28,969 nt of DNA from Macrostomum lignano (lineage: Eukaryota), in contig NIVC01002408.1 of assembly GCA_002269645.1 (NCBI GenBank), positions 1 through 28,969 on the forward strand. Direction: 5' to 3'. How positions within the stretch are numbered: position 1 is the stretch's first letter; each line of letters begins with the position of its first letter. A program made the translations under genes and the position numbers. The notes under the pieces were generated by a model, which was not told the DNA's origin, did no database searches, and saw only the letters and a list, made by a program, of their open reading frames with translations. Below, one piece after another: positions 754-28,969 of the stretch.

Positions 754-1010
754 CATACATGCGCAACACCCGGCGCGAGGGGCCCAGCCAAGGTAAGTCG
801 CAAAAACGCCCACCTGAAAGAATACACAGGCGTAGTACTAATTAAATGACGAAGCATTTAGCCTTAATAAGACAGTCATAGTTACTCCTGCCGTTTACCC
901 AGAATTGCGTTAATTTTTAATTTCTTTAGGGTTTCTTTCACAGGTAAGTGGCATTTTGGGTCAAAAAGTAAGACGCACCAGTGTAAATCAGGGGGGGTTG
1001 CGCATGTATG
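754..1010. mobile_element. Non-autonomous 8-bp-TSD DNA transposon (hAT- or P-like MITE), 28S-core family, copy 1 (257 bp)
   Basis: Perfect 14-bp TIR CATACATGCGCAAC...GTTGCGCATGTATG. TSD attaggat (746-753) / aataggat (1011-1018). Subterminal AAGT(C/G)GCA motifs. Inserted into the 43-bp minisatellite. Confidence 0.9.
837..900 (-). other. 28S rRNA-derived 64-nt segment inside MITE copy 1 (not a functional rRNA gene)
   Basis: The reverse complement gggtaaacggcaggagtaactatgactgtcttattaaggctaaatgcttcgtcatttaattagt matches the conserved eukaryotic LSU sequence GGGTAAACGGCGGGAGTAACTATGACTCTCTTAAGGTAGCCAAATGCCTCGTCATCTAATTAGT (recalled) at 54/64, ungapped. Confidence 0.85.
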
Positions 1011-1688
1011 AATAGGATTTTTATATGATATGATTATGATTAGGCCTCACTATCTTTTAGTAAAGTGGCATTAGGATCTTTATTTGGACTCGAGATCTTT
1101 TAGTAAAGTGGCATTAGGATCTTTATTTGGACTCGAGATCTTTTAGAAACGTGCCATTAGGATCTTTATTTGGCCTCAGTATCTTTTAGAAACGTGGCAT
1201 TAGGATCTTTATTTGGACTCGAGATCTTTTAGAAACGTGCCATTAGGATCTTTATTTGGACTCGAGATCTTTTAGAAACGTGGCATTAGGATCTTTATTT
1301 TGACTCGAGATCTTTTAGAAACGTGCCATTAGGATCTTTATTTTGACTCGAGATCTTTTAGAAACGTGCCATTAGGATCTTTATTTGGCCTCAGTATCTT
1401 TTAGGAACGTGGCATTAGGATCTTTATTTGGCCTCAAGATCTTTTAGGATGTGGCATTAGGATCGCTTATGATGTGGCTTTAGGATGTTTTGGTATGCGA
1501 CCTCAAAATCTATTAAGGCATCGGGATCTTTAAAGACGTGCTTTTTAGGATCTCTGATGATTTGATATGGCTTCAGAATATTTTTTAGAGTTGGCACTCT
1601 ATCTTTAGATCTTTATTCTTTGGTTAGTACTGCTTTAACTCCGTTGAGTCAATTTTTATTGCATTGAAGACGGACAAAGAAATCTCAC

Positions 1689-1856
1689 CAATCTCTCCTC
1701 GGCAGACAGATCCTCATTATTGTTATTATTATTTCTACTAAGACAGCGGTCACTGCCACCGCTAGTCGATGACTGGCACGAGGGGGCCGCAGGACAATCA
1801 GCATTTGACAGCGACGTGGACGACGATGCAAGCATTGTCGAATGCTCGAAAAACAT
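1689..1856 (-). CDS. Candidate first coding exon of the same orphan gene
   Basis: Frame MFFEHSTML...NNNNNNEDLSAEERL ends at donor TTG|GTGAGA (plus-strand ac at 1687-1688). Splicing the 1194-bp GT-AG intron 495-1688 reads ...EDLSAEERL|VLAQLDSAM... without a frameshift. Confidence 0.45.
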
Positions 1857-2562
1857 TGAAGTGACGTGTCAAATAAAAGTCAGTTTTTTTAGCTTTGTTC
1901 TTTTGACGACTGACTATGATGCAAGTAGACTGGCGGATAGGAGACTTTGCACACCGTTATATATTAGTGACTTTCCAAGGTAAATTTTATTGTTTAACTC
2001 AACTAGGTGAGCAAAAGGTCACAGACGTACTACTCGTACATAGTCATCTGCCATCCAGCCGTCAACGTGTCGTCAGCTTCTGTCTCACACGCACTAAACA
2101 GTTGCCAGCCATACTAAAAAAACTGCCTCAAGCTTAACGGCCTTCTGCTTTTGCAGCAGTGACTGAGGCTTTGTGTGCCGAGTGCTGGCGCCTTTGTGTG
2201 AGCAGGCAATAAACATGGCGCCGCCAAAAATACAGACTCGCTCTAATTAGCTAGCCAGGTATGGCAATGAAATTCGAGGCACCGTAGTATTAGCTGAATC
2301 AAATTAATAAGTTCGAGTTCTCATACACTACAGCCAGTTTCCACGCTCAAATGGATTGTGTAGCTGAGCAGCTTCTGTTTTCCCTAAACGAGTAGATAGC
2401 AACTACTTTACGCGTCTTATACTACTAATAGTATTTGACAGAGCTGTAACCAGTTAAAACCAAAAAGAATGTCGGAATATTTAACTTTTACTACTAATAA
2501 CACAAGAATGCAGCTTTGTGCAAGATCTAGGAACCAAAAAATGTTGGAGCCCTTATCATCAA

Positions 2563-2807
2563 CATACATATACAACTACTAGCCAACCCAGCCAATCTGG
2601 CCAGTGTAAATTGTGAGAGCAAGGATAGGTTGCAAAATTGACCACTTTTGGCGACTTCTGACAAATGTTTAGGCGATTTTTTAAAACTTATTTGACAAAA
2701 ATTGACAACAAATCTTCGTTTTCTTTTGGATAAGTTTAAACCTAAGTTACATTTTAGTAAAAACTAAGTTGTATGGCCAGTGTAATTTTAGAAGTTGCAC
2801 ATGTATG
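2563..2807. mobile_element. Older relative of the CATACATGCGCAAC MITE family lacking the 28S-like core
   Basis: Ends catacatatacaac...gttgcacatgtatg. The terminal 40-50 nt at each end align with copies 2 and 3, mostly via C->T and G->A changes. Degenerate TSD atcatcaa/accattat (5/8). Confidence 0.65.
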
Positions 2808-3418
2808 ACCATTATAATAGCATTTTGCTGTCATTTTAAGCTATGACAAGAGTGGCAGAATGCAACAATTGAGGCAACTACTGTTTGCTGGTCATCAAAG
2901 ACCTAATCTTACAAGCATTCAACTTAGTCCTTGTTCTTTTGGAAGCTGCTTAAGGCTTACAATCATTCTTCTATGAATGATTACTTCTGACACAAGAATG
3001 CAACTTGGGGCAAATGGCAGAAATAGAAGCCAATGCTAGAGCCATTTCTTTATTATTCTTCATGTAGTACAGCAATTATTCTATAATTTTGTGGGTAGAC
3101 AATAGTCATAGTCGGAATATGGCCCACAAAACAATTGATAATAACATACATATCATAACAAAGTTTAGCTTTTCCAATTAATAATCACTATCTTTTACCA
3201 CAATAAAACTGAATGGTTATAAGTGATTTTGGATTAATATTATTGCAATTTTGCTATCACAAATAGGTATTCAAGATTCAAGACACAAAGGGCATTAGCC
3301 AAGAAATTTGAAAAAGGATTATAAATGCTTATTTTTAATGTTTCTTTCAATCCAAGCATTATTAAGGTCAAAGGTTCATAGCTTACTCTTTGATAGACAT
3401 CATACTCAAGGCAATTTC

Positions 3419-3520
3419 TTGGATTCTAAGCCTAGATTTATTAATCCTCTTAGGCCAATTGTTTTGATGACTAATACTTCTGAATACAAATTAGCTAAAT
3501 GCCTTTCACAAATAGTCCCT
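3419..3520 (+). pseudogene. Penelope-like retroelement reverse-transcriptase fragment
   Basis: Translation PLRPIVLMTNTSEYKLAKCLSQIV resembles the PLE RT motif PLRPIVS..G(S/T)P.Y.LAK.L..IL. Short and CpG-decayed. Confidence 0.55.
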
Positions 3521-4768
3521 CACAATTGGCCATTGTATTGACGATTGATCATGTGTATTAAATTGAATTGTATTGAATGTAATTCAAGTATTGGAGACTA
3601 TAACCCTCTAATCTGGACAATGCCTAGGACTAAAAAGATTATAGATGCAGTATATATACCAGTAGAGTACATACCACTCAGGACAGATTTACATTGAATG
3701 CTACTAGTATAGAATAGGAACACTACCAATAAAGGACAACAAATATGCAGATATACTTCGCCTGTCCGGAAAGTCGTGAGAATGTGTCAGTCAAGCAAGA
3801 AAGCAGCAAGCTGATGACATGGCACACATAAAATTTCAATAATAGACTTATATATGTCTATGGTGAAAATTTTTGTTATTCTAGCAGCAAAATTGGGGGC
3901 AGGGGCGAGCTCAGCATAAAGTGCTCAATAACCAATGCAACGCGGTGATCAAGCTTGAAAAATTTAATAGCGAGTTCGTCAAAATGGAAGATTTCCAGGC
4001 TTATACCTATGCTAGATACCGTCTTGGAATCTCTGCTATTAGTTGTTATGACGAACTACTTAAAGTTTATGGAGATGCCGCACCAGGTCAGTCAACGGTT
4101 TACAGATGGTACTCAAAGTTCCGTGATGAAGCATTCCCCCTGGCCTCAGCTCCTCGGACTGGCCGGCCACGGTCAACAAGGACAACGGAACTGATCGAAA
4201 CCTGCCGAGCTCTCGTTGAAGAGGATTCAAAAGTTAGTGTCCGAGACCTCGCCGACTTTTTGGAAGTTGGAAAAACAACAGTGCACGAAATTTCGACCGA
4301 GGATTTGCACATTCGAAACGTTTCTGCCGTCTGGGTTCCTCATGCTCTATCCGAGGAGAACAAGACTGCTCGCATCAATTGTGCCAAGCAAATTCGCAGG
4401 CTTTTTTACAACGAGGGCATGGAAAACTTTTGCGACAAGTATGTGGTGGAAGATGAGACGTGGGTGTACCTGAACAACACTGGCACAAAGCAAAACAACA
4501 GGTGCTGGCTTGGCCAAGGAGATCATCGGCCCCAGGTTGTCAGGCACTCGGTCGGGAATGCAAAGACAATGCTTCTGGTTGCTTTCACTCCAAACAAGCG
4601 CTTGGGGCCAAACAGCCCCGAAGCAAACTGTTGATGCAGATGGCATAGTTAAGTTCATTCGGCACACCGGAGACCTATGGCGTACTCTGAGGTCAAAGCC
4701 AATTCACCTGTTGGATGTTCTTTGGCAGTGGGACAATGCGCGACCTCACGTAGCCCGTTCTGTGCAGC

Positions 4769-5066
4769 CATACATGCGCAACAGTCGGCCGAGTCGGCCG
4801 ATCCGGCCGACTGATTTGGCAGCCAACCAAGGAAGTCGCAAAAATGCCCACCCAAAAAAATACCCCCGTAGTAGTACTAAGTAGCTGACGAGGCATTTTT
4901 GCCTGATAAGACAGTCATAGTTACTCCCGCCGTTTACCCAAAGTTGCGTTAATTTTGCTTTGGGGTTTTTTTACATGTAAGTCGCATTTTTGGCCAAAAA
5001 CTACGTCGCATTTTTGTTAAAACTAAGTCGCACGGCCGACCGAATTTTGGACGTTGCGCATGTATG
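4769..5066. mobile_element. 28S-core MITE copy 2 (298 bp), nested in the mariner transposase
   Basis: Perfect 14-bp TIR. Perfect 8-bp TSD tgtgcagc (4761-4768 and 5067-5074). Four GTCGCA subterminal motifs. Confidence 0.95.
4876..4939 (-). other. 28S rRNA-derived 64-nt segment inside MITE copy 2
   Basis: 53/64 ungapped match to the recalled LSU consensus. The first 27 nt are identical, and 8 of the 11 mismatches form one block replacing AGGTAGCC. Confidence 0.9.
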
Positions 5067-5409
5067 TGTGCAGCAGTACATGGAGTCCCGTGGAGTTCAG
5101 CTGGTGTTTCAGAGTCCTTACAGCCCGGACTTCAATCTGTGCGACCGTTTTTTGTTCAGTTGGATGAAGAATGATTTCTCCAGGCGAGTATTCAGCGACC
5201 ACAATGAAGTTCGAGAAGCTGCGTTGCAGTGGGCAAGAGGCCTTGACGAAGATTGTTTAAAAAGAGAGGTTCAGCGACTCATTGACCATTGCCAAGCTGT
5301 AATAAATGCAAGGGGAGATTACATTACCAACTAGTGCTGTTATTGTGTTTTTTGATAGTTCTGACTGATTTTTTAAATACATTCTCGCGACTTTCCGGAC
5401 AGCCGAAGT

Positions 5410-5590
5410 ATACTCAACAGATACTCAGATATACTCAAACATATACTCAGACAATTACTTACTTTACATACATACTAAGAAAAATATATAAACTAATTTT
5501 AATAAACTTTGGTGGCTTAGCAATGGGATTATCAAGGAGATAGAACTACAAACCCCTAGCATAGCTTGGTGTCAACAGTGAGATTATTAG
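5410..5590 (+). mobile_element. LTR-retroelement-like relic A with paired tRNA-Leu-type primer-binding-site motifs; its upstream part (about 3590-3755) is split off by the mariner
   Basis: tggtggcttagcaatgggat (5510) and tggtgtcaacagtgagat (5567) resemble TGGTGGCAGCGGTGGGAT and TGGTGTCAGAAGTGGGAT (complements of tRNA-Leu 3' ends), after an AATAAA-containing stretch. Confidence 0.45.
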
Positions 5591-6095
5591 AAGTAGAACA
5601 AACTTCTATGACACTATATTGTTTCATTTTTTCTGAAATAAAAATTGCTTTAAAATTGGCTATTTTAAAAACATCTTACAATTATAAGAAATATTTTTGT
5701 TTTAATATTATTTAAAAGCAATGTTATCAATATAGAGGCCTAATAAAATGCTTTAATATGAGATAGGTCTCTTTATTTTATGCAAAAATTAAAATAAAAC
5801 TTGTGTTAAGCCTTGAAGCAATCATTATTATGCAATTAAGAAAAGTTAATAGTGAGTTCCAAAGAAATATCTTAAAGTATTTTTCTAAAGAAGAAGACCT
5901 TAAAGAAGACATTAAGTATCTTAAAGAAGACCAAAGTAAAAAGAAAGAATACAAAGTAGATCCACAATAATACACATAGAACAGAGGCTGTGACAATTTA
6001 ATCTTAGTAATGCCTAAGACTAGAGGTAATATATGAAGTATATATACTAGTAGTAATAAAATTAATACACCACTTAGGCTAGATTTATAAATAAT

Positions 6096-6393
6096 CATAC
6101 ATGCGCAACAGTCGGCCGAGTCGGCCGATCCGGCCGACCGATTTGGCGGCCAATCAAGGAAGTCGCAAAAATGCCCACCCAAAAAATAACCTGAAGAGTA
6201 GTACTAAGTAGCTGACGAGGCATTTTAGCTTAATAAAACAGTCATAGTTACTCCTGCCGTTTACCCAAAGTTGCGTTAATTTTGCTTTCGGGTTTTTTTA
6301 TATGTAAGTCGCATTTTTGGCCAAAAACTACGTCGCATTTTTGTTAAAACTAAGTCGCACGGCTGACCGAATTTTGGAGGTTGCACATGTATG
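6096..6393. mobile_element. 28S-core MITE copy 3 (298 bp)
   Basis: TIR with one mismatch (gttgcacatgtatg). Perfect 8-bp TSD taaataat (6088-6095 and 6394-6401). Roughly 20 differences from copy 2. Confidence 0.95.
6203..6266 (-). other. 28S rRNA-derived 64-nt segment inside MITE copy 3
   Basis: 51/64 ungapped match to the recalled LSU consensus; the same central block is replaced. Confidence 0.85.
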
Positions 6394-6401
6394 TAAATAA
6401 T

Positions 6402-6680
6402 GCTACCAGAACTAATAAGAATGCTATTAGTAGAATAATAAATACCATCAATAAAGAGATAAGACTTACTTAGAATTATACTCAGACTTTTATTGAGAAC
6501 AATACTAAGACTAATACTTGGACAGATTCTCAAACCATTACTTAGATATATACTAAGAATAATTCATAGACCAATTTTAAGAAAGTATAGAATTAGCCTA
6601 GGATAACTTTGGTGGCATTAGTAGGATCATAAAGAGAGAAATATAGCCCTAGGACAAATTGGTAACAATAGTAAAACCAA
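6402..6680 (+). mobile_element. LTR-retroelement-like relic B with paired PBS-like motifs
   Basis: gctaccagaactaataagaatgcta aligns with relic C (about 25460). Motifs tggtggcattagtaggat (6610) and tggtaacaatagtaaaac (6660). Confidence 0.4.
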
Positions 6681-7779
6681 TTATAATTTTAAAGGGAAGA
6701 ACTTTCCCTTGGAACAATTTGGTGTTAGCTTTCAAGGTATTTACAGAGACAGAAGCATTAGGCTATAATAGCAAAAAAGCTTAGAATGCCCACTTGATTG
6801 TACCTAAGGCCAACTTAACTGTAAGGCTAATGAAATTTGAAATTTGCAATACTTACATTACTATCTATGACTATAAGCCAATACTAATAATGATAGCCAA
6901 CACAATGTTAACAATTTGCTATTTAGCCATATATAGGATTTTATAAAATTTTCAAGCTTGCAAACAATGCTTTGAAACTTCTTTTAACTATATAGCCAAT
7001 CATAGCCTACACTTTATAGACCCTAACAACTTTGAACTTCATAATCCACACTAATATCATTGAGGATAAGAGGTCTTACTTAGGCCCATGTCAAGGCCAT
7101 GCATAGCATGCACTTTTAATATTCATATTGAAAGCTATCTAAATGAATATCTATGATGCCAACTCTTTCTAGGAAATGGGTTTAGCAACTTTCTATATTG
7201 GCTACAAAATATTACTATTGATTTCTAACTATAACAATATACTTACCTAACATTTATCAAAATTTTTGTCTGATATTGATAAGTTAATTAAAAAACAATA
7301 ATTTAATACTACAAAGTAGATTGCAAAATTGCCTATTACTATTATTATATTCTATATCAAAGGCTACTAATATGCAGTGTAACGACAGCACATTTTAAAA
7401 ATGATTGAGCAGGACAATTTTTTTGGGCAGCAATATTAGGCATTGCTTTTTGGAAACAAAATTGTTTCATATAAAATAATTAACAAACAGAAAACAAAAA
7501 AATTACATTTTCAGTCATAAAAACTTTTAAAAAACTTTTTTTGAATCCAGTGATTTTTTATTTTTAACTTAGACAATAGCCCTGTGACACTGACACAATT
7601 TTTATACATTTCTAAATTATAGATTTCCCACTTCACTGCGCCAGTTTCACATCATATTCAAATCAAATCATTTGGTCAAATCATATCTCAAATCATGTCT
7701 TACCTTAAATTATATAGATGTTAAGTTTTTACTCATATTATCAACTAGCAATTCACTTCTTTTTCTTTGCAGCTGGCAT

Positions 7780-8480
7780 TTTTTTAACTTGGCTACTTTG
7801 GCACTTCCACAGTTGTTGATCTTGTTGATCCGCCTTTTAAAGCATCTCCTTTGCCACTTTTCTCATTTCATTAATTACCTTTTACTTGGCAGCTTTGTCT
7901 TTTTGTTTTTTGTCTTTTCCCACTCCTTGGCCTTCTGATGCTGCATATTTAGCTTTTTTGAAGGCAGTTCATTACTTCTTCATGCTCCTTTGCCTTAGCC
8001 CTTAGCAGATGCTTTGGCATTTGCATGGGCATTGAAGCTGAGGACCCATAGCAAGCAGTCAATGCAAAAATTGGATGGCTCTTTTCTAAAGGCCTTTAGC
8101 CAAGACTTGATAAACAAAAGACAGTCTAGTGTATAATTGGCCAACTGGTTTTGCTGCTTTGTAAAATTGTTAGCAATCCATTTGATGACCTGCTCATTGT
8201 TGGCATTTCTATGTGGTAGACTGTACGCAGCACAACCAAGCTAGGCTAGCAGTGGAAATTCCTCACATGGCAATGTGGCCCAGAACTTCTCCAGTTCTTT
8301 GACTCTAGCAAGCTCCTCAAATAAAATGACACACAGCTTAATGACCTCTAGTCATAGGTTGTCTAGACAAGCAGGTTCAATTACAGTTAGCATAGGCCTA
8401 GCCTTAGCAATCAGGATGACCATTTTTTCTAAATTCAATTGGTGGTTTCTTCCAAATTTTTGAGCAGATAGTGACATTCA
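7780..8480 (-). pseudogene. hAT-superfamily transposase C-terminal (hATC dimerisation domain) remnant
   Basis: Minus-strand 8103-8300 reads LEKFWATLPCEEFPLLA*LGCAAYSLPHRNANNEQVIKWIANNFTKQQNQLANYTLDCLLFIKS, matching the hATC pattern FW...FP.L..LA...SLPHSNA..ER.FS....K.RNRL...TL..LL. A Lys/Glu-rich tail with stops follows. Confidence 0.75.
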
Positions 8481-9779
8481 TTAGTGTATTTCAAAAATTT
8501 GCGCAATTAAGCAGAAAAATAAAAATACTAAAATAGTACAAAATAGGCCCTATTAAAATAGTGCAGGTAGGCCTATGGTCAGAATGTTAATAGTATGCCA
8601 GGGCAGGGCTAGGCCTATCCTATAGAATAATTTGTTAAATTAGGCCCTAGGCCTAGGTCTATTTTTCACTTGAATTCAATTCCTTTCTATTTTTAGAGTC
8701 CAAAGTATGAAAATAAAAAAAATAATTTAATAAACAATTCTATCTATAGGGTAGCAGCAATAGGCATAGGGCCTAGGCCTAGTCTAATTTTGTCCTTTAT
8801 TTAATTTTTCTTGAAATTTCTCATTAGGCCTATTTTTATTTATATTTATCTTATCTATTCCAATGTTTGCCTTTGGCTTAGGCCTAGCCTTTAGGCTTAA
8901 GTTGCTCAGGGGCCTAGCTAGTGCATGTATAGGCCTATGAAATGGTGCAATAATTGAAAATATAGACTTAGTGAAAAAATAGGCTTAGCAGTTCAACTTC
9001 AATTCAAATGGATTCTTTTAAAGTTTAAGATGTGCTAGTTTTGTCATCTAGGCCCAAGTTTCTGTGAAACTGCCAGAAGGCCTAGGGCCTAGGCTATCAC
9101 AGTTGCATTAATGAACCATAGGCCAAAGGGCCTAGCTAGTCCCTACTAGCCACAAGCAAGCCTAAGCCAGCCATGGAATATTGGCATGGGCATAAGGATT
9201 TATGATAAAACAGTCTCTGCAGTGTTTAGACTTTAGACCCTAGACGCACTAATGCGGGCAAAATCCGAATTTCACAGTTCAATTCAGTCTGAGTGGTATT
9301 TGGTTTAAGGTAGCCTGCTTGCTACATTGGCTGAAAGTAGACCTATATATAATATTATGGCAAGTCCAATTGCGCAACGTCACCTTTTAAATAATGATGT
9401 CACTATATATTATTAAACAGCTGCAATTACGTCTACCATACAGCACAATATTGCTAATAGTGTATATTAACACACTTTTAAAAGTAATAACAGCAGAGGT
9501 TGTATTATAAAGTTTTGAAATTTGTTTAAATTTACTTTTGATTAAAATGATTCGAATGCAGAAATATTATATACATACCGTGCAACAAGCAAAAAAGAAT
9601 ACTAAGAAGACAAAGCTTTGTACTTCAGGCCAACTGTGAATCAAGGACTCGGACTACTCAATTAGAAAGACGGAAAACCGTCGTTTCTTGGAAAGTTTAA
9701 GAAAGCAGGTTTTTTCATCTTTTCCACTTTTCATTCCTGGTTCTGTTTGTCTGGCCGTGTTTTCTGGGAGGTCATCCCG

Positions 9780-10060
9780 CATTGCATGGCTGTAAAAGTA
9801 GAGGTAAATCTGCAATGAACTGGAGCAGGTCGCCCATTTGCTGCGATCCATGTACCCGGGGCATCGGACAAGGTGCTCCTCTTCAACAATGCGCGGACTC
9901 ACAAAGAAATCAACCAAGGCCAAGCTGGCAAGCCTGCTGGGCTTCAGTATTTTGCCCCTCCCACCATATACTCGCCGGACCTCTTGCTATGTGACTACCA
10001 TGTGTTCAGGTCCCTCCAGAACTTTTGCGATGTTCGCAGCAATTCGCAGTTCGCCAACAA
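9780..10060 (+). pseudogene. Degenerate mariner transposase catalytic-domain fragment
   Basis: Frameshifted motifs ICNELEQVAHLLR, LLFNNARTH (DNARPH-like) and YSPDLLLCDYHVFRSLQNF. No TIRs found. Confidence 0.75.
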
Positions 10061-10866
10061 GTAGCGCAGCGTGTAGAGCAAACAGTATAGAAATGGATAG
10101 ATTCTAGGCCTGCGAGCTTCTGGAGAGAGGGGATCGAGGGATTGCTAGCAAGATGAGAGGGGGTCAGAGGGTCATGAATTGCAACTAAATCACATCGCTG
10201 TAAACTGTTCCTGAGACTATTTGTTACAGTTTTCGATGTCAGCAAAGTTGTTATATCACACGAGCTGTGTACTTGTTAAGTACAATCAACGAACAAACTA
10301 GTTTAATCTGTTTTATAATAATTGAAATTTTAACTGAATTAAACACAAAAAAATAAATGAATATATGTAGAAATTAGATGCCGCCTAATTGTACAGCAGT
10401 AAATCATAATAGTTAACTTATTTATCGGATAGATTTGTTATTTCATTTGCACTATTGAATTAATTTACAAATGTCACATAACTTCAACAAATAATCTGTC
10501 AAGATAATTAGAAATAAACAACTAAATAAAATGTACTACTGGATACTAGAACGATATAAGCGGAATAACTTGACTAGTATTGCAAAATAATGAAATTACT
10601 GAGTGCGAAAAAAATGTAATAAAATCGAACTACGGTAGAATATTGCATAATAATAACAATACTGGCATCAGAACAATGCGAGCTATGAATGTATTTTCTA
10701 AAATATTAGCCCACAGAAGACAAACCCGCTAATAAATCATTAGACTGCCTTGCTAGATATTCTTTAATAATTTAATAAAATGTGAGAATATAGCATTATT
10801 ACGCGTATGTGACTATAAATAGAAATGGAAAATCAATATAGCAGTAACACAGTAAACGCTTATAGA

Positions 10867-11069
10867 CATACATGCGCAACCCCCCTGATTACACCAGCCA
10901 AAGAAACGTAAACATAATTTTGGGTAAACGGCAAGAGTAACTTTAACTATATATTATTGAGACCAAATGCCTCGTCATCTTATTTTAGTACTATATCCGT
11001 ATTTTTCGGGTGGGCATTTGTGTGACTTACATTGGGTGGGCCCCTGGGCCCGGGTGTTGCGCATGTATG
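10867..11069. mobile_element. 28S-core MITE copy 4 (203 bp), opposite orientation, related to copy 1
   Basis: Perfect 14-bp TIR. Ends match copy 1 inverted (ccccctgattacacc; gggcccgggtg). TSD cttataga vs ctta(aaa)taga. Confidence 0.85.
10922..10989 (+). other. 28S rRNA-derived segment inside MITE copy 4 (rRNA sense on plus strand)
   Basis: gggtaaacggcaagagtaact...ccaaatgcctcgtcatct; both flanks are retained and the centre is replaced by AT-rich sequence. Confidence 0.8.
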
Positions 11070-12012: not shown

Positions 12013-15000
12013 CTGCGGTGGAGTATGGATTCACAAATACCGATCACAAATCTCATTATCTACCTGAGATACCGATCACAAATCTCATTATCTACCTGAG
12101 ATACCGATCACAAATCTCATTATCTACGTGAGATACCGATCACAAATCACATTATCTACCTGAGATACCGATCACAAATCTCATTGTCTACCTGAGATAC
12201 CGATCACAAATCTCATTATCTACCTGAGATACCGATCACAAATCTCATTATCTACCTGAGATACCGATCACAAATCTCATTATCTACGTGAGATACCGAT
12301 CACAAATCACATTATCTACCTGAGATACCGATCACAAATCTCATTATCTACCTGAGATACCGATCACAAATCTCATTATCTACCTGAGATACCGATCACA
12401 AATCTCATTATCTACCTGAGATACCGATCACAAATCTCATTATCTACCTGAGATACCGATCACAAATCTCATTATCTACCTGAGATACCGATCACAAATC
12501 TCATTATCTACCTGAGATACCGATCACAAATCTCATTATCTACCTGAGATACCGATCACAAATCTCATTATCTACCTGAGATACCAATCACAAATCTCAT
12601 TATCTACCTGAGATACCGATCACAAATCTCATTATCTACCTGAGATACCGATCACAAATCTCATTATCTACCTGAGATACCGATCACAAATCTCATATCT
12701 ACCTGAGACACCGATCACAAATCTCATTATCTACCTGAGATACCGATCACAAATCTCATTATCTACCTGAGATATTCGCTCACCAATTTGCCCAATGATT
12801 CCCTAAGCAGCGCTTTGCCGCCGAACTGAGACTCGACCCGGCGTTTAACCAGCGACCAGGCCATGGGCACCACCTCCAGCGGGATGCCGCCCTTCCATTT
12901 CTGGCCGAACTGGCTGCTGTACTTGCTCTCGTCGCACACGATCACCAGGGTGCCGGCGGCCGTGTCAACAATTTTCTCCTGCAGCAGGCAGCCGCCACCG
13001 CCTTTGATCATGTTCAGTTCGGCGTCGATCTCGTCGGCGCTGTCAGCCGACCAGTCCAGCTCTTCATCGCAGTGCTCCAGCTCGAATAGGCGAAGGCCGC
13101 GCTCCAGGATCAGGTGCTTGGCCTGGGGCAGGGGTAACACAGATGAGTTAGCATTAGCATGACCTTTGACCTTTGACCCACTGTCTCAACATGACCCTTG
13201 ACCTATTGTCTTAACATGACCTTTGACACATTGTCTAACACGTTGACCCATTGTCTAACACGTTGACTCATTGTCTAACACGTTGACTCGTTGTCTAACA
13301 CGTTGACTCATTGTCTAACATGACCCTTGACCCACTGGTTTAACATGACCCTTGACCTATTGTATTAGCATAACTCCGGGTCCATGAGAATTGCCCGCCG
13401 AGATTTGCCCGCAGTGCAATTTGCCCGCGAGTGGATTGCCCGCGAGCGAGTTGCCCGCGGAGTTTTTTCCCGCCGAGGTTTGCCCACAATGCTTTTTTAC
13501 TGCAGATTTTGTCTGCACCTTCCCAATGCTTATTACATGTAATAAATCTTAGTAAAGAGATTTACACGATCAAAACTTTTTGATTGTAACTGCATATCAA
13601 ATGCGTATTTTTTAGGGGGCCGGGCAATACAGACAGAATCTAGCTGCCAAATGCGCTGCAATAAAAAAGCATTGCGGCCAAACCTCGGCGGGAAAAAACT
13701 CTGCGGGCAACTCGCTCGCGGGCAAATTGCACTGCGGGCAAATCTCGGCGGGCAAATCTCGGCGGGCAAATCTCGGCGGGCAAATCTCCACGGGCAAATC
13801 TCCTGCAGGCAAATCTCGGCGGGCAATTCGTCTGCTGGCATTTCTCGTGCTCCCCATAACTCCTTAACCAATTGTACTAACATGACCTTTGAACTATTGT
13901 TGTATAACATGAACTTTGACACATGGTCTAACATGACCTTTGACCCATTGTCTAACATGACCTTTGACCCATTGTCTAACACGTTGACCCATTGTCTAAC
14001 ATGACCTTTGACTCAATGTCTTAACATGACCCTTGACCCATTGTCTAACATGACCCTTGACCTATTGTATTAGCATAACTCTTAACCAATTGTACTAACA
14101 TGACCTTTGACCCATTGTCTACATAACCCTCGATCCATTGTCTAACATAAAATTGAACTATTGTCTAACATGAACTTTGACACATGGTCTAACATGACCC
14201 TTGACCCATCGTCTTAGCGTGACCTTTGACCCATAGTCTTGATAAGATCTTTTGATCCCATAACTCGACTTTAACTTTGACCCAGACGCGACAACACCTT
14301 CGATTCAAGAGACTACTTTTAGTAGGGCAGTTCGAACATCTTTTAGCTAAAGAAACAACACCGCGTACTCGTACCAGCTCTAGCTTCAGGCCAAACCGCT
14401 CTCATTTATCCCTATTTTGCATCGCATCAATCACTTCCGCTGCTAATAAATAGCAAATCCCAAGCCAGACTATAGGAAAGTGTCCAAATACAGTACGAGC
14501 TCCGGACACTGCTGTAAGCCGGTTTCTGAGGCATAAATCAGATATGTGGGATAATATTATGCAAAATATACCCTGCCGCCGTTATTAAACAAGTAAGCAA
14601 ATTAGGGAATAGATTTAAATAGCGATTCTTCCAGCTCCAAATTTCAGTAGCAACCCAGTGACCAACCCTCCTGTGCATCAGTAGCAACCCAGTGACCAAC
14701 CCTCCTGTGCATCAGTAGCAACCCAGTGACCAACCCTCCCGTCCATCAGTAGCAACCCAGTGACCAACCCTCCTGTCCATCAGTAGCAACCCAGTGACCA
14801 ACCCTCCTGTGCATCAGTAGCAACCCAGTGACCAACCCTCCTGTCCATCAGTAGCAACCCAGTGACCAACCCTCCTGTCCATCAGTAGCAACCCGGTGAC
14901 CAACCCTCCTGTGCATCAGTAGCAACCCAGTGACCAACCCTCCTGTCCATCAGTAGCAACCCAGTGACCAACCCTCCTGTTCATCAGTAGCAACCCAGTG

Positions 15001-18000
15001 ACCAACCCTCCTGTGCATCAGTAGCAACCCAGTGACCAACCCTCCTGTCCATCAGTAGCAACCCAGTGACCAACCCTCCTGTCCATCAGTAGCAACCCGG
15101 TGACCAACCCTCCTGTGCATCAGTAGCAACCCAGTAACCAACCCTCCTGTCCATCAGTAGCAACCCAGTGACCAACCCTCCTGTCCATCAGTAGCAACCC
15201 AGTGACCAACCCCCCCGTCCATCAGTAGCAACCCAGTGACCAACCCTCCTGTGCATCAGTAGCAACCCAGTGACCAACCCTCCTGTGCATCAGTAGCAAC
15301 CCAGTGACCAACCCTCCTGTGCATCAGTAGCAACCCAGTGACCAACCCTCCTGTCCATCAGTAGCAACCCAGTGACCAACCCTCCTGTCCATCAGTAGCA
15401 ACCCGGTGACCAACCCTCCTGTGCATCAGTAGCAACCCAGTGACCAACCCTCCTGTGCATCAGTAGCAACCCAGTGACCAACCCTCCCGTCCATCAGTAG
15501 CAACCCAGTGACCAACCCTCCTGTCCATCAGTAGCAACCCAGTGACCAAATCTCCTGTGCATCAGTAGCAACCCAGTGACCAACCCTCCTGTGCATCAGT
15601 AGCAACCCAGTGACCAACCCTCCTGTGCATCAGTAGCAACCCAGTGACCAACCCTCCTGTGCATCAGTAGCAACCCAGTGACCAACCCTCCTGTCCATCA
15701 GTAGCAACCCAGTGACCAACCCTCCTGTCCATCAGTAGCAACCCAGTGACCAACCCTCCTGTCCATCAGTAGCAACCCGGTGACCAACCCTCCTGTGCAT
15801 CAGTAGCAACCCAGTGACCAACCCTCCTGTGCATCAGTAGCAACCCAGTGACCAACCCTCCTGTCCATCAGTAGCAACCCAGTGACCAACCCTCCCGTCC
15901 ATCAGTAGCAACCCAGTGACCAACCCTCCTGTGCATCAGTAGCAACCCAGTGACCAACCCTCCTGTCCATCAGTAGCAACCCAGTGACCAACCCTCCCGT
16001 CCATCAGTAGCAACCCAGTGACCAACCCTCCTGTCCATCAGTAGCAACCCGGTGACCAACCCTCCTGTGCATCAGTAGCAACCCAGTGACCAACCCTCCT
16101 GTCCATCAGTAGCAACCCAGTGACCAACCCTCCTGTCCATCAGTAGCAACCCAGTGACCAACCCTCCTGTGAATCAGTAGCAACCCAGTGACCAACCCTC
16201 CTGTGCATCAGTAGCAACCCAGTGACCAACCCTCCTGTGCATCAGTAGCAACCCAGTGACCAACCCTCCTGTCCATCAGTAGCAACCCAGTGACCAACCC
16301 TCCCGTCCATCAGTAGCAACCCAGTGACCAACCCTGCTGTGCATCAGTAGCAACCCAGTGACCAACCCAGCCGCTCACCTGATAGGAGGTCGGGATGCAT
16401 CTGACAGACCAGCCGCGCTGTCGAATGAGTTCAGCTGCGGGCCAAATAAGTCAGTTTTCGATGATTTTTTAATCAAGCAGTCTGAATCAATGGAATTAAT
16501 GTTTTGCCTGTTTAGAGACTGACAAGCTGACATTTAAAAACCGGCTGTCGCCAAATAGTCAGGACATCAGTGGCGCCAAATAGTCAGGATTTCATTGGCG
16601 CCAAATAGTCAGGACATCAGTGGCGCCAAATAGTCAGGATTTCATTGGCGCCAAATAGTCAGGATTTCAGTGGCACAAAATAGTCAGGATTTCATTGGCG
16701 CCAAATAGTCAGGATTTCAGTGGCGCCAAATAGTCAGGATTTCAGTGGCACAAAATAGTCAGGATTTCATTGGCGCCAAATAGTCAGGATTTCAGTGGCA
16801 CAAAATAGTCAGGATTTCATTGGCGCCAAATAGTCAGGATTTCAGTGGCACAAAATAGTCAGGATTTCATTGGCGCCAAATAGTCAGGATTTCAGTGGCA
16901 CAAAATAGTCAGGATTTCATTGGCACCAAATAGTCAGGATTTCATTGGCGCCAAATAGTCAGGATTTCAGTGGCACAAAATAGTCAGGATTTCATTGGCA
17001 CCAAATAGTCAGGATTTCATTGGCGCCAAATAGTCAGGATTTCAGTGGCACAAAATAGTCAGGATTTCATTGGCACCAAATAGTCAGGATTTCATTGGCG
17101 CCAAATAGTCAGGATTTCATTGGCGCCAAATAGTCAGGATTTCATTGGCGCCAAATAGTCAGGATTTCATTGGCGCCAAATAGTCAGGATTTCATTGGCG
17201 CCAAATAGTCAGGATTTCAGTGGCACAAAATAGTCAGGATTTCATTGGCGCCAAATAGTCAGGATTTCATTGGCGCCAAATAGTCAGGATTTCATTGGCG
17301 CCAAATAGTCAGGATTTCATTGGCGCCAAATAGTCAGGATTTCATTGGCGCCAAATAGTCAGGATTTCATTGGCGCCAAATAGTCAGGATTTCAGTGGCA
17401 CAAAATAGTCAGGATTTCATTGGCGCCAAATAGTCAGGATTTCATTGGCGCCAAATAGTCAGGATTTCAGTGGCACAAAATAGTCAGGATTTCATTGGCG
17501 CCAAATAGTCAGGATTTCATTGGCGCCAAATAGTCAGGATTTCATTGGCGCCAAATAGTCAGGATATCAGTGGCGCCAAACAGAATTAAGTGGCGCCATG
17601 GCTAACTAGGAATCAGTGTGATTGTGGGAAGACACAATTAGAGAATAGAAAATGATACACAGAGAAAGCACAAGCTATATAAGCATAGATATCAATTCTA
17701 TCCCAAGCAATAAAGCCGGTAAGGACGCCCTCTAGCAGAGCAGCATTATTAGATTAGTCAGCCAACGCGCGCACAAAAGAAATATCCTTGCCGGGGTCCA
17801 GCTAGTCAGCAAGAAAGAAAATTGCATTTTCAAAGTAATTCTCCAGTCCTGAATACGGACAGATACCCGCCTATCCAGCGCGACCCAAATTTTATTGCAT
17901 TATAACGCATGGTCGCAATATTTTTTCTATATTGCCAGGGATTATTGGGCTGGACTATATTGGCTTCAAGGTTTGAAGCAGGCCAGACCCAGTCGTTTTT

Positions 18001-21000
18001 TTAATAAATGAAGCCATATTGTCATATTTTAAAGTGCACTTGCCTTTAATATTAGGGATAGAAATGGGATCTCGAATATAATGGTAGGAAACGTAAAATC
18101 CATCGACGTCTGAAACCCTGTAACTAGTGAAACCCTGTAACAGGTTAAACCCTGTAACAGGTGAAAACCTGTAACAGGTGAAAACCTGTAACAGGTGAGA
18201 CCCTGTAACAGGTGAGACCCTGTAACAGGTGAAACCCTGTAACAGGTGAAACACTGTAACAGGTGAAAACCTGTAACAGGTGAAACCCTGTAACAGGTAA
18301 AAACTATGTAACAGGTAAAAGGCCAATAGGTAAGAAACTGTTAACACACTTCGAAAAAACTATCAGGGTAGCCCCATAGTTCTAAAAACAGCTGTAACTA
18401 GAATTCCAGTCTATTGAAGGTTAAATTACTCTACAATAGAAGCCATCACTAAAACTTCTTCCTTTCGTTTAACTGTTAATAAACCAAGGCTTAATTAGCA
18501 ATACAAATAGTTGGCTACTGCCTTCAATAGGCGCATAAAGAGTTTCCTTTAGCAGCCAGATTGTGCCGCATACTGCAAACACTTGCAAACTCTGTCATGC
18601 ACTCTCATCTCAACTTTCTCCCTCTATCGCTCCCAGCAGTTGAGTTGGTTTCGCTGCCCTTTCCCCGCCCAAAGCTTCTGCTGAGAAGGAATGGTTTAGA
18701 ATTGCCATCGGAATGAGCTCGATAAGTGCGAAGCGAGGATTTTGTCGCGGCCCGGAGGGAGAAGGGAATGCAAGATAGAGCGGATGAGAAGGGGGGAAGA
18801 GAAATGATTGAAGAGATGGCTAGGCTGCTGCATTTCCTCATCTAGCAGGTGCTCCCAGCTTCTGGCTTTTCAAGAGCGCCTGTCGACCCTCTTATGCATG
18901 TCACCTGCCTGTCTGTCTGCCTGCTTTTCAACATGTTAATAGTAGACCTGAGCACGTTGATAAAAATGCAGATAACTAAACACTAAGGATGCTGATTTTT
19001 CTTGCACAGCTGAGATGGGCTGTGTGCATAGCTGGGTGTGTGCATAGCTGAGATGGGTGTGTGCATAGCTGGGTGTGTGCATAGCTGAGATGGGTGTGTG
19101 CATAGCTGGGGTGTGTGCATGGCTGGGGTGTGTGCATAGCTTGGGTGTGTGCATAGCTTGGGTGTGTGCATAGCTTGGGTGTGTGCATAGCTCGGGTGTG
19201 TGCATGGCTGGGTTGTGTGCATAGCTGGGTGTGTGCATAGCTGGGTGTGTGCATAGCTGAGATGGGTGTGTGCATAGCTGGGTGTGTGCATAGCTGAGAT
19301 GGGTGTGTGCATAGCTGAGATGGGCGTGTGCATAGCTGAGGTGTGTGCATAGCTGGGTGTATGCATAGCTGGGTGTGTGCATAGCTGAGGTGTGTGCATA
19401 GCTGGGTGTGTGCATAGCTGAGGTGTGTGCATAGCTGGGGGTGTGTGCATAGCTGGGGGTGTGCATAGCTGAGGTGTGTGCATAGCTGGGGGTGTGTGCA
19501 TAGCTGGGTGTGTGCATAGCTGAGGTATGTGCATAGCTGGGGGTGTGCATAGCTGAGATGGGTGTGTGCATAGCTGGGGGTGTGCATAGCTGAGATGGGT
19601 GTGTGCATAGCTGAGATGGGTGTGTGCATAGCTGAGATGGGTGTGTGCATAGCTGGGGGTGTGCATAGCTGAGATGGGTGTGTGCATAGCTGAGGTGTGC
19701 ATAGCTGAGGTGTGTGCATAGCTGGGTGTGTGCATAGCTGAGTGTGTGCATAGCTGAGTGTGTGCATAGCTGAGGTGTGTGCATAGCTGGGGGTGTGCAT
19801 AGCTGAGATGTGTGCATAGCTGGGTGTGTGCATAGCTGAGGTGTGTGCATAGCTGTTATGTGCATGGCAGTTATGTGCATGGCTGTTATGTGCATGGCTG
19901 TTATGTGCATGGCTGTTATGTGCATGGCAGTTATGTGCATGGCAGTTATGTGCATGGCAGTTATGTGCATGGCTGTTATGTGCATGGCTGTTATGTGCAT
20001 GGCAGTTATGTGCATGGCAGTTATGTGCATGGCAGTTATGTGCATGGCTGTTATGTGCATGGCAGTTATGTGCATGGCTGTTATGTGCATGGCTGTTATG
20101 TGCATGGCTGTTATGTGCATGGCTGTTATGTGCATGGCAGTTATGTGCATGGCTGTTATGTGCATGGCAGTTATGTGCATGGCTGTTATGTGCATGGCAG
20201 TTATGTGCATGGCAGTTATGTGCATGGCTGTTATGTGCATGGCAGTTATGTGCATGGCTGTTATGTGCATGGCAGTCAGACTAAGGACAAAAGAAACGAG
20301 AGTGCTTCAAACTGTAAGCAAAGTGAAAGGCAGGCTGTTCAGAATTCCATAGTTGGGAATCGAATCGAGTGGCCTAAAAAACCAAAGAAAGCCATAAAGA
20401 AAACAGGTCTTTCACATTGTTTTCTTACTAATTAAAAGGAGCTAGAAGATTGCGTGACCAGCGCCATGCAGGGAGATGGTGAATGAGACCGGTCACTTCC
20501 GCTCCACTCAGCATCCTCTCCCATTATTGACTCCCTCTCGTGCACTCAGGAGAGCACAATCGATCGAGTTGGGAGCTGTCCCCAAAACCAGACCGCCTTT
20601 CTTCGCTTGGCTGTGCCTCAGCCATGCAGCCTATCCCCAGTGCTTACTATATAACTAATCTTTCCCACTATGTCCATATTCGTCTCGGGAATTAAGTTTC
20701 AGCGAGTTATGCGAGAGGGAGAAAAATTGGGACAAGCCACTTCGGAAGCTGGGTAGAGGCTTAAGTCTGAAGTCCGGCATCAACAGCGGCGATGAGATGG
20801 CCTGAGAGTCGACACAGGCTTTTTAAATCTCTACAAGACTTAATATACGAGGGGTGTCCCAAAAGTTCCCGGAATGTCTAACGTAGCTCTTCAACGGAGC
20901 CATGATGTTTCACGCCCTTGGTGTCAAATGAAAGGAAGTTTTGTCACGAAGAAAATGAAGTTAAAAGCATGTTGATATCTGTTTTTATTCAGGAGCTGCA

Positions 21001-27134: not shown

Positions 27135-27432
27135 GCTCTACAGCTCGATCTGTGCGTCCTCTGTGAGGCCTCTGGACCCAGGCTCTACTCTGTGCGTCTT
27201 CTGTAAGGCCTCTGGACCCAGGCTCTACTCTGTGCGTCTTCTGTAAGGCCTCTGGACCCAGGCTCTACTCTGTGCGTCTTCTGTAAGGCCTCTGGACCCA
27301 GGCTCTACTCTGTGCGTCTTCTGTAAGGCCTCTGGACCCAGGCTCTACTATACCCTGTGCGTCCTGTGACGCCACTGGACCCCGGCTCTACTCTGTGCGT
27401 CCTGTGACGCCACTGGACCTAGGCTCTACTCT
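27135..27432. repeat. 40-bp minisatellite, about 7 copies
   Basis: Unit ggctctactctgtgcgtcttctgtaaggcctctggaccca. Confidence 0.9.
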
Positions 27433-28402: not shown

Positions 28403-28507
28403 CTAAAATAAATTCTACCTCGTAAAGAAATTTCATGTTGAGAATATTTTGTTTCTTGCGTTGAAAATTTGATAAAATTGAACATACTTTGTAGATGTGA
28501 ATGTAGT

Positions 28508-28969
28508 TTTAGTCACGGTGAATACTGTTTTAGTCACGGTGAACACTGTTCTAGTCACGGTGAATACTATAGTCACGTGAATACTATTCTATTCACGGTA
28601 AATACTATTCTAGTCACGGTAAATACTGTTCTATCACGGTGATACTATAGTCACGGTGAATACTATTCTATTCACCGTGAATACTATTCTAGTCACGGTA
28701 AATACTGTTCTAGTCACTTTGAATACTGTTCTAGTCACTTTGAATACTGTTCTAGTCACTTTGAATACTGTTCTAGTCAACTTCTGATAATACTGTTCTA
28801 GTCACGGTGAATACTGTTCTAGTCACTGAATACTCTAGTCACTATTAATACTGTTCTAGTCACTTTGAATACTGTTCTAGTCACGTGAATACGTCTACAC
28901 TTTGAATACTGTTCTAGTCACGGTGAAATTACTGTTCTAGTCACGGTGAATATTGTTCTAGTCACGGTG
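28508..28969. repeat. About 21-bp minisatellite running off the window end
   Basis: Unit tagtcacggtgaatactgttc with tagtcactttga variants. Confidence 0.92.

Follow-up and report, generated by a model that had tools for sequence, protein, structure and literature searches.

Non-autonomous transposable elements (TEs) commonly acquire pieces of ribosomal DNA (rDNA) as modules, mostly without benefit to the TE (PMC10946416). [quoted passage not shown] Four of its copies contain a 64-nt fragment of the 28S ribosomal RNA (rRNA) gene, altered at the site used by the retrotransposon R2 and the endonuclease I-PpoI, and we consider it probable that this fragment was captured once and has since been inherited as a passenger. 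The family falls within the class of TEs with a captured rDNA fragment, for which a recent review includes 5S-bearing short interspersed elements (SINEs) and terminal-repeat retrotransposons in miniature (TRIMs), SINE28 and the intergenic spacer (IGS) repeats of Pokey and, in its Table 2, no DNA-transposon MITE with a fragment of 28S coding sequence (PMC10946416). Our search of the literature, with Repbase and Dfam lying outside it, returned no described 28S-bearing MITE and no account of Macrostomum MITEs or of this family, in agreement with a preliminary description of the locus, made from the sequence alone, which knew of no DNA-transposon MITE with such a core. If no more than a capture is involved, the family adds an element of this kind to a short list.

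The closest described systems each share part of this structure. Pokey, a Daphnia piggyBac element, and its MITEs (mPok) have an rDNA-derived interior and involve the same 28S neighbourhood (PMC4912750; PMC10946416), but their captured pieces come from the IGS and the internal transcribed spacer, their duplications are TTAA and they use a specific 28S site, whereas the Macrostomum elements hold a piece of 28S coding sequence, have target-site duplications (TSDs) of 8 bp that are unrelated to TTAA, and are not inserted in rDNA. Mammalian SINE28 is likewise a dispersed repeat with a 28S fragment (PMC10946416). It is a retroposon, however, while the Macrostomum elements have terminal inverted repeats (TIRs), fixed 8-bp TSDs, no tail and one clean empty site, as expected of cut-and-paste transposition. 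5S-bearing SINEs and the Cassandra and Ajax TRIMs are also TEs with an rRNA-gene module (PMC10946416). In those elements the 5S module supplies an RNA polymerase III promoter, which is a clear benefit, whereas in the Macrostomum elements the rRNA hairpins are broken. To our knowledge, the H69–H71 piece of 28S has no promoter activity.

Two further comparisons bear on how such an interior may arise. Pack-MULEs and other Pack-type elements, and the filler DNA of deleted Ac/Ds and P elements, are cases in which host sequence is gained during gap repair and then amplified. Like the family described here, these are non-autonomous TIR elements with an interior of host sequence; they differ in usually being larger and in carrying fragments of protein genes, rather than 64 nt of an rRNA gene spanning a mobile-element hot spot. 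R2 itself reportedly has small, internally deleted non-autonomous derivatives (SIDEs) bounded by 28S sequence on either side of the R2 site. The same 28S sequences form the flanks in both cases, and the upstream arm of the Macrostomum fragment is 36 nt, the maximum of upstream 28S sequence that R2 transcripts can carry and the furthest upstream position of ribozyme cleavage reported (PMC3774820). SIDEs differ, however, in that they lie in rDNA, keep the R2 ribozyme and 3′ untranslated region and move by reverse transcription, whereas the carrier here is a TIR element whose two 28S arms enclose no detectable R2 sequence.

Structure and mobility of the elements

The TIR CATACATGCGCAAC (other end GTTGCGCATGTATG) has nine matches at two or fewer mismatches in the window, against 0.14 expected. 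Eight of these pair into four elements of 257, 298, 298 and 203 bp at 754–1010, 4769–5066, 6096–6393 and 10867–11069 (copies 1 to 4), and the TIR scan and pairing thus bear out the coordinates, lengths and common TIR that the preliminary description had assigned to them. Taking the 28S-sense strand as the orientation, copies 1 to 3 lie on the minus strand and copy 4 on the plus strand. The 14-bp TIR is perfect at seven of the eight termini; the right TIR of copy 3 carries a CpG>TpG change. That all four elements are flanked by 8-bp TSDs, as previously stated, is exact for copy 2 (TGTGCAGC, at 4761–4768 and 5067–5074) and copy 3 (TAAATAAT, at 6088–6095 and 6394–6401) and holds imperfectly for copy 1 (ATTAGGAT/AATAGGAT, at 746–753 and 1011–1018, agreeing at seven of eight positions) and copy 4 (flanks CTTATAGA/CTTAAAAT, agreeing at five of eight).

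The ninth TIR match led to a fifth member of the family that was absent from the preliminary description (copy 5, 2563–2807 by the nhmmer envelope, no strand assigned). This older relative has decayed ends, eroded at CpG positions (left CATACATATACAAC; right GTTGCACATGTATG, with one mismatch to the TIR), and flanks that agree at five of eight positions (ATCATCAA/ACCATTAT). It has the TIR, TAAGT(C/T)GCA-type motifs and GTGG.C..TTTTGC.AC in common with the rest of the family and lacks the rRNA core. Copies 1 to 4 form two subfamilies, A (copies 1 and 4) and B (copies 2 and 3, which are 93.3% identical), and copy 5 represents a third, core-less lineage; copy 4 is a deletion derivative of subfamily A without approximately 78 nt of one subterminal region. 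All five copies lie within 11 kb of the window. The changes in the TIRs at 6380–6393, 2794–2807 and 2563–2576 are CpG>TpG/CpA transitions, and within the core G12>A likewise affects a CpG; together these hint at methylation-type repeat decay in the host genome.

The elements have the hallmarks of MITEs, namely TIRs, a TSD of fixed length, an empty site, and a short non-coding interior. In the four elements of 203–298 bp all six frames are interrupted and the longest open stretch is 67 aa. Pfam coverage of the elements consisted of two open reading frames (ORFs) that each overlap an element, of which that at 5778–6182 gave no domain and that at 4990–5334 gave a DDE_3 match falling in the part that belongs to a mariner. 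Copy 2 contains subterminal direct repeats of a TAAGTCGCA motif (4978–5032, plus strand; TRF period 22, 2.4 copies), and further copies of the motif lie at 4832–4840, 794–802, 945–953, 969–977, 6159–6167, 6305–6359 and, on the minus strand, 11021–11029. A motif scan placed 13 of the 28 TAAGTCGCA-like matches in the window within the five MITEs. The repeats sit between the ends and the core, a single one to one side of the core and two or three to its other side, and are likely to be transposase-binding sites.

Copy 2 is nested in the ORF of a degenerate mariner-like (Tc1/mariner) element at 3763–5335 on the plus strand (Pfam HTH_48, HTH_32 and DDE_3), which is frameshifted near 4600 and contains a piece that matches an M. 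lignano UniRef entry with 100% identity over 32 aa. Intact relatives of this mariner (L019–L021, from Logan runs SRR31628414, SRR31628436 and SRR31628437) align on both sides of copy 2 with 77% nucleotide identity and have a single TGTGCAGC where the window shows TGTGCAGC-MITE-TGTGCAGC. By this alignment, the related mariner provides an empty site for the copy 2 locus, which proves one insertion; no further MITEs were found in the Logan mariner contigs, which are only 1.3–1.7 kb long. The mariner-like transposase is the only one that Pfam detects in the window and is unrelated to the MITEs. Copy 1 sits in a satellite with a 43-bp unit that includes GGCATTAGGATCTTTATTTGG, which again fits an 8-bp duplication and allows the target to be reconstructed. 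The satellite itself (700–753 and 1052–1505, approximately 9.6 units, 93% matches) runs on both sides of copy 1.

The flanks of the MITEs consist of this satellite, the mariner ORF and other non-rDNA sequence, and their TSDs are unrelated to 28S. The suggestion in the preliminary description that the core was captured by an rDNA-targeting transposon is therefore unsupported, as all five insertions lie outside rDNA. With regard to superfamily, a TSD of 8 bp is compatible with hAT, P and a few others. The hAT superfamily has 8-bp TSDs and TIRs that begin with YARNG, and the P superfamily has TSDs of 7–8 bp and TIRs that begin with CANRG. The TIR of the Macrostomum elements begins with CATAC, which departs from the hAT consensus at its third (T) and fifth (C) bases; the TSD length fits hAT, and only the TSD of copy 1 fits the pattern nTnnnnAn. 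The TSD length also fits the P superfamily, and CATAC matches its consensus at four of five positions. We do not place the family in hAT and assign it to no superfamily.

The 28S core and its altered block

Copies 1 to 4 carry a 64-nt segment homologous to the H69–H71 region of eukaryotic 28S rRNA, which contains the R2 and I-PpoI targets. The cores lie at 837–900 (minus strand), 4876–4939 (minus), 6203–6266 (minus) and 10922–10989 (plus). We reproduced exactly the ungapped identities of 54, 53 and 51 of 64 positions that had been given for copies 1 to 3; the core of copy 4, which had been included in the same statement, does share the segment, although it is 68 nt long and aligns only with two 2-nt insertions. 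Searches against both an rRNA model and genes uphold the 28S origin. Copy 1 matched the Rfam model LSU_rRNA_eukarya (RF02543) with 24.7 bits and an E-value of 3.2e-4 (model positions 2200–2310). In BLASTn searches against 13 genuine environmental large-subunit (LSU) rRNA genes from a metagenome scan (L001–L013), copies 1 to 4 gave E-values of 3e-16, 1.3e-15, 1.9e-13 and 8e-10 to 1.9e-11, respectively, with 85.9% identity over 64 nt for the core of copy 1. A chance resemblance to rRNA is ruled out by E-values that reach 3e-16. A bacterial or organellar LSU origin we take to be rejected as well, since the core follows the eukaryotic consensus GGGAGTAACTATGACT...GCCAAATGCCTCGTCATCTAATTAGT.

The homology is confined to this short fragment. 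Rfam searches of the whole window and of copy 2 alone gave no LSU match, and only copy 1 passed the filters; its 24.7 bits compare with a gathering score of 50, and only approximately 64 nt are clearly homologous, which is not what an LSU gene or pseudogene would give. The homology ends sharply at both core boundaries, and rDNA-like sequence in the window is limited to the four cores. An extension of the homology upstream was considered and rejected: the cmscan alignment reaches model position 2200, but with approximately 45–55% identity in A-rich sequence, and we therefore took the fragment as 64 nt. Copy 5 had no BLASTn match to the 13 LSU genes and a 28S similarity of z −0.7, and no decayed core was found in it. 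Further copies of the family were also sought beyond the window. Six-frame peptides of the MITEs had no match among 5.8 billion proteins; a core pattern that excluded canonical 28S, scanned against metagenomes, recovered no MITEs, all of its matches being genuine LSU genes that carry a TTATGG variant; prokaryotic genomes scanned with a MITE-specific motif gave five matches, close to the chance expectation and with no similarity around them; and two viral scans gave none. In practice, MITE copies of this kind would be mislabelled as LSU rRNA by repeat maskers, and their cores can draw multi-mapping rRNA reads in small-RNA and RNA-seq analyses of Macrostomum.

The fragment is roughly centered on the point of R2 insertion, with 36 nt upstream of it and 28 nt downstream, and lies within the 84-bp R2 substrate duplex; the same 28S stretch has been published as the R2 target duplex (PMC12180492). 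Within it, mismatches concentrate at positions 34–41 (AGGTAGCC), corresponding to 860–867, 4899–4906, 6226–6233 and 10957–10964 in copies 1 to 4. The clustering that the preliminary description had pointed out at the R2/I-PpoI site is thereby borne out; under random placement it has a p-value of 0.0026 for copy 1 and below 5e-5 for copies 2 and 3, although these copies share ancestry and are not independent. No core-bearing copy retains an intact I-PpoI consensus CTCTCTTAAGGTAGC (PMC6294500) or an intact R2 insertion point. Among the environmental LSU genes L001–L013, the I-PpoI/R2 target carries TTATGG or TTATTG and not the canonical TTAAGG, so that natural variation exists at this supposedly invariant site.

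A majority-rule ancestor of the cores is identical to 28S at 55 of 56 arm positions and, ungapped, at only two of eight positions of the block, which indicates a discrete event and not gradual decay. The ancestral block would have read TTAAGGC(C/T), that is, the 28S sequence after duplication of TTA and deletion of TAG, which restores the register; the extra TTA before a TTAAGG-like sequence and the missing TAG are present in all four cores. The block had earlier been described as replaced. That the site is specifically altered is confirmed, but the alteration is more simply explained as a +3/−3 indel scar from one ancestor, and the best reading of it is that one or two small indels, not independent substitutions, arose before the subfamilies split. 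The four cores also have the same boundaries, beginning with GGGTAAAC and ending with TTAGT, followed by the non-rRNA junction ACTA, and C28>G is common to copies 1 to 3. Together with the TTA and TAG changes, the shared boundaries, junction and substitution argue for a single ancestral capture. The position of the lesion, at TTAAGG^TAGC, leads us to infer that it is a trace of imprecise break repair. In a comparison of copies 2 and 3, half of the 20 differences fall in two patches, seven just beyond the core (4860–4869 in copy 2, 6187–6196 in copy 3) and three in the block, a distribution that suggests complex mutations or patchy conversion.

Origin and fate of the captured fragment

The explanation that we favor, and consider probable, is that a scarred 28S fragment entered the MITE family in a single capture and has been passed on by descent as a passenger with no function shown. 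A transposase encoded elsewhere would recognise the 14-bp inverted ends, and probably also the TAAGTCGCA repeats, and would excise the element and reinsert it with an 8-bp staggered cut. An ancestral element would have gained the 28S core in one copying event, most likely a template switch while an excision gap was under repair, or else the copying of a dispersed rDNA fragment, and the core-bearing subfamilies would then have inherited it. Either the donor or the capture event would already have been scarred at the TTAAGG^TAGC hot spot, where R2, I-PpoI-type enzymes and TTAA-specific transposons cut, yielding an ancestral core that differed from 28S by the TTA duplication, the TAG deletion and one substitution. 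We infer the single capture, the origin of the scar and the passenger status of the core; the last is indicated by the absence of the core from copy 5, the broken hairpins, arms that are not consistently better conserved than other sequence, and the lack of insertions in rDNA. At the R2/I-PpoI hot spot, the scar could preserve a fossil trace of site-specific endonucleases acting on flatworm rDNA, and host rDNA units with CTTATTAAGGCC, if present, would favor a scarred donor.

Several observations weigh against this history in its simplest form. A random 64-nt piece of the approximately 3.4-kb LSU gene would include the R2 point only about 2% of the time. In addition, the 28S sequence directly 3′ of the fragment, GACGCGCATGAATG, resembles the TIR GTTGCGCATGTATG in the same orientation, with 11 of 14 positions identical, a likeness that purely random capture does not predict. 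The arms of copy 1 are 91% identical to those of copy 2, compared with 78% for the other interior sequence (nominal p 0.04), and 91% identical to those of copy 3, compared with 76% (nominal p 0.02), a level of conservation similar to that of GGGTGGGC..GACTT, a putative protein-binding motif (81–90%). The block, for its part, changes fast, as copies 2 and 3 differ at three of its eight positions while being 93% identical overall. Finally, only five copies were examined, and the core-less state is represented by one old fossil, which does not prove the core dispensable.

These points bear on a set of alternative scenarios. One may postulate that the 28S arms are cis-elements that bind the transposase or a nucleolar or rDNA-binding factor and are selected on master copies while the center drifts. 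The arm conservation of copy 1 against copies 2 and 3, its resemblance to that of the GGGTGGGC..GACTT motif, a block that evolves several times faster than the arms, and the retention of the core in the 203-bp deletion derivative, copy 4, are all consistent with this scenario. The comparisons were made pairwise between subfamilies over the BLAST-alignable interior, with indels scored as differences, and the four core-bearing copies represent two subfamilies. Nominal significance was reached in two of the five comparisons; between copy 4 and copies 1, 2 and 3 the arms are 78–80% and the other interior 74–77% identical (p 0.67–0.83). The earlier proposal that the flanks are maintained is thus favored by copy 1 against copies 2 and 3 but not by the comparisons with copy 4, nor by copy 5, which has the same ends and motifs without the core. 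Given the small sample and a bias toward cores that were noticed for being recognizable, the data hint at heterogeneity and do not make a robust case for selection, so that the indication of selection to keep the flanks is weak; a more conventional candidate for transposase binding is, moreover, the repeated motif TAAGTCGCA. We consider a binding role of the arms unlikely, although it deserves consideration. A narrower version, in which the arms are kept for binding an rDNA-specific protein such as R2 or a relative of the homing endonucleases, with the MITEs as mimics that titrate or exploit it, appears very improbable; if the arms were truly constrained, the family would represent a natural system in which mimics of the R2 target are dispersed, of relevance to groups engineering R2 for gene insertion. 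More improbable still is that the cores act as uncleavable decoys that titrate R2 or a homing endonuclease, or that loss of the cut site allowed the MITEs to escape R2. The fragment coincides with the biochemical R2 target footprint (PMC12180492), the I-PpoI consensus and R2 point are lost in every core-bearing copy, and R2 is recorded in the flatworm Schistosoma mansoni (PMC10946416), but there is no evidence for R2 in Macrostomum, host-level selection on single dispersed copies would be negligible, and the upstream arm already carries C28>G in copies 1 to 3 together with CpG decay. The escape version would account for the ancestral change but not for the kept flanks.

The position of the fragment invites a different scenario, in which the element was born at rDNA and the TIR-like site, not the R2 site, set the position of the capture, with GACGCGCATGAATG either used by a transposase in place of an end or providing the microhomology for a template switch. 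This sequence, which lies immediately after core position 64, is the single best match to the TIR on either strand of a 3.5-kb LSU contig (L002, 2985–2998). L006, in which the position is 64–77, is a natural LSU variant with the exact 11-mer GCGCATGTATG; the calculated per-position chance of a match at 11 or more of 14 positions is approximately 4e-5. Such a birth would nevertheless require a second event, as the core and that TIR now lie 60–95 nt apart, with non-rRNA subterminal sequence between them, and chance alone gives an 11/14 match roughly every 10 kb. We regard this scenario as rather improbable. The capture site could still be non-random under the single-capture model that we prefer, through a break at the R2 site, microhomology or guidance by a pseudo-end, with the caveat that both coincidences were noted post hoc. 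It has also been suggested that the core gives rise to rRNA-like or antisense transcripts, which would enter small-RNA pathways and in this way shield the element or silence it. Both orientations occur within 11 kb (copies 1 to 3 against copy 4), so that read-through transcripts could pair, and the elements fold more stably than shuffled sequences (z −4.6 and −3.2). This stability, however, stems from the TIRs and GC-rich subterminal palindromes, and folding analysis found no inverted copy of the core inside the element that could make it double-stranded; any pair of MITEs would, moreover, give the same effect without an rRNA piece, and we hold this explanation to be scarcely credible. An rRNA-like fold of the core itself was ruled out, as the H69-type and 3′ hairpins are broken by non-canonical pairs in the Rfam alignment.

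Other features of the window

The right two-thirds of the window consist mostly of long, well-conserved minisatellite arrays with units of 15–58 bp in up to 50 copies, located at 12037–12774, 14644–16368, 16549–17580, 18111–18320, 19016–20276, 22591–22868, 27149–27432 and 28506–28969. Weak Rfam microRNA matches at 18150–20271 are artefacts of these repeats. The first array, with a 32-bp unit, adjoins an exon of ribose-5-phosphate isomerase A at 12763–13140 on the minus strand (Pfam E-value 4e-32), which is 91% identical to an M. lignano protein and could be a paralogue from a polyploid genome or a pseudogene.

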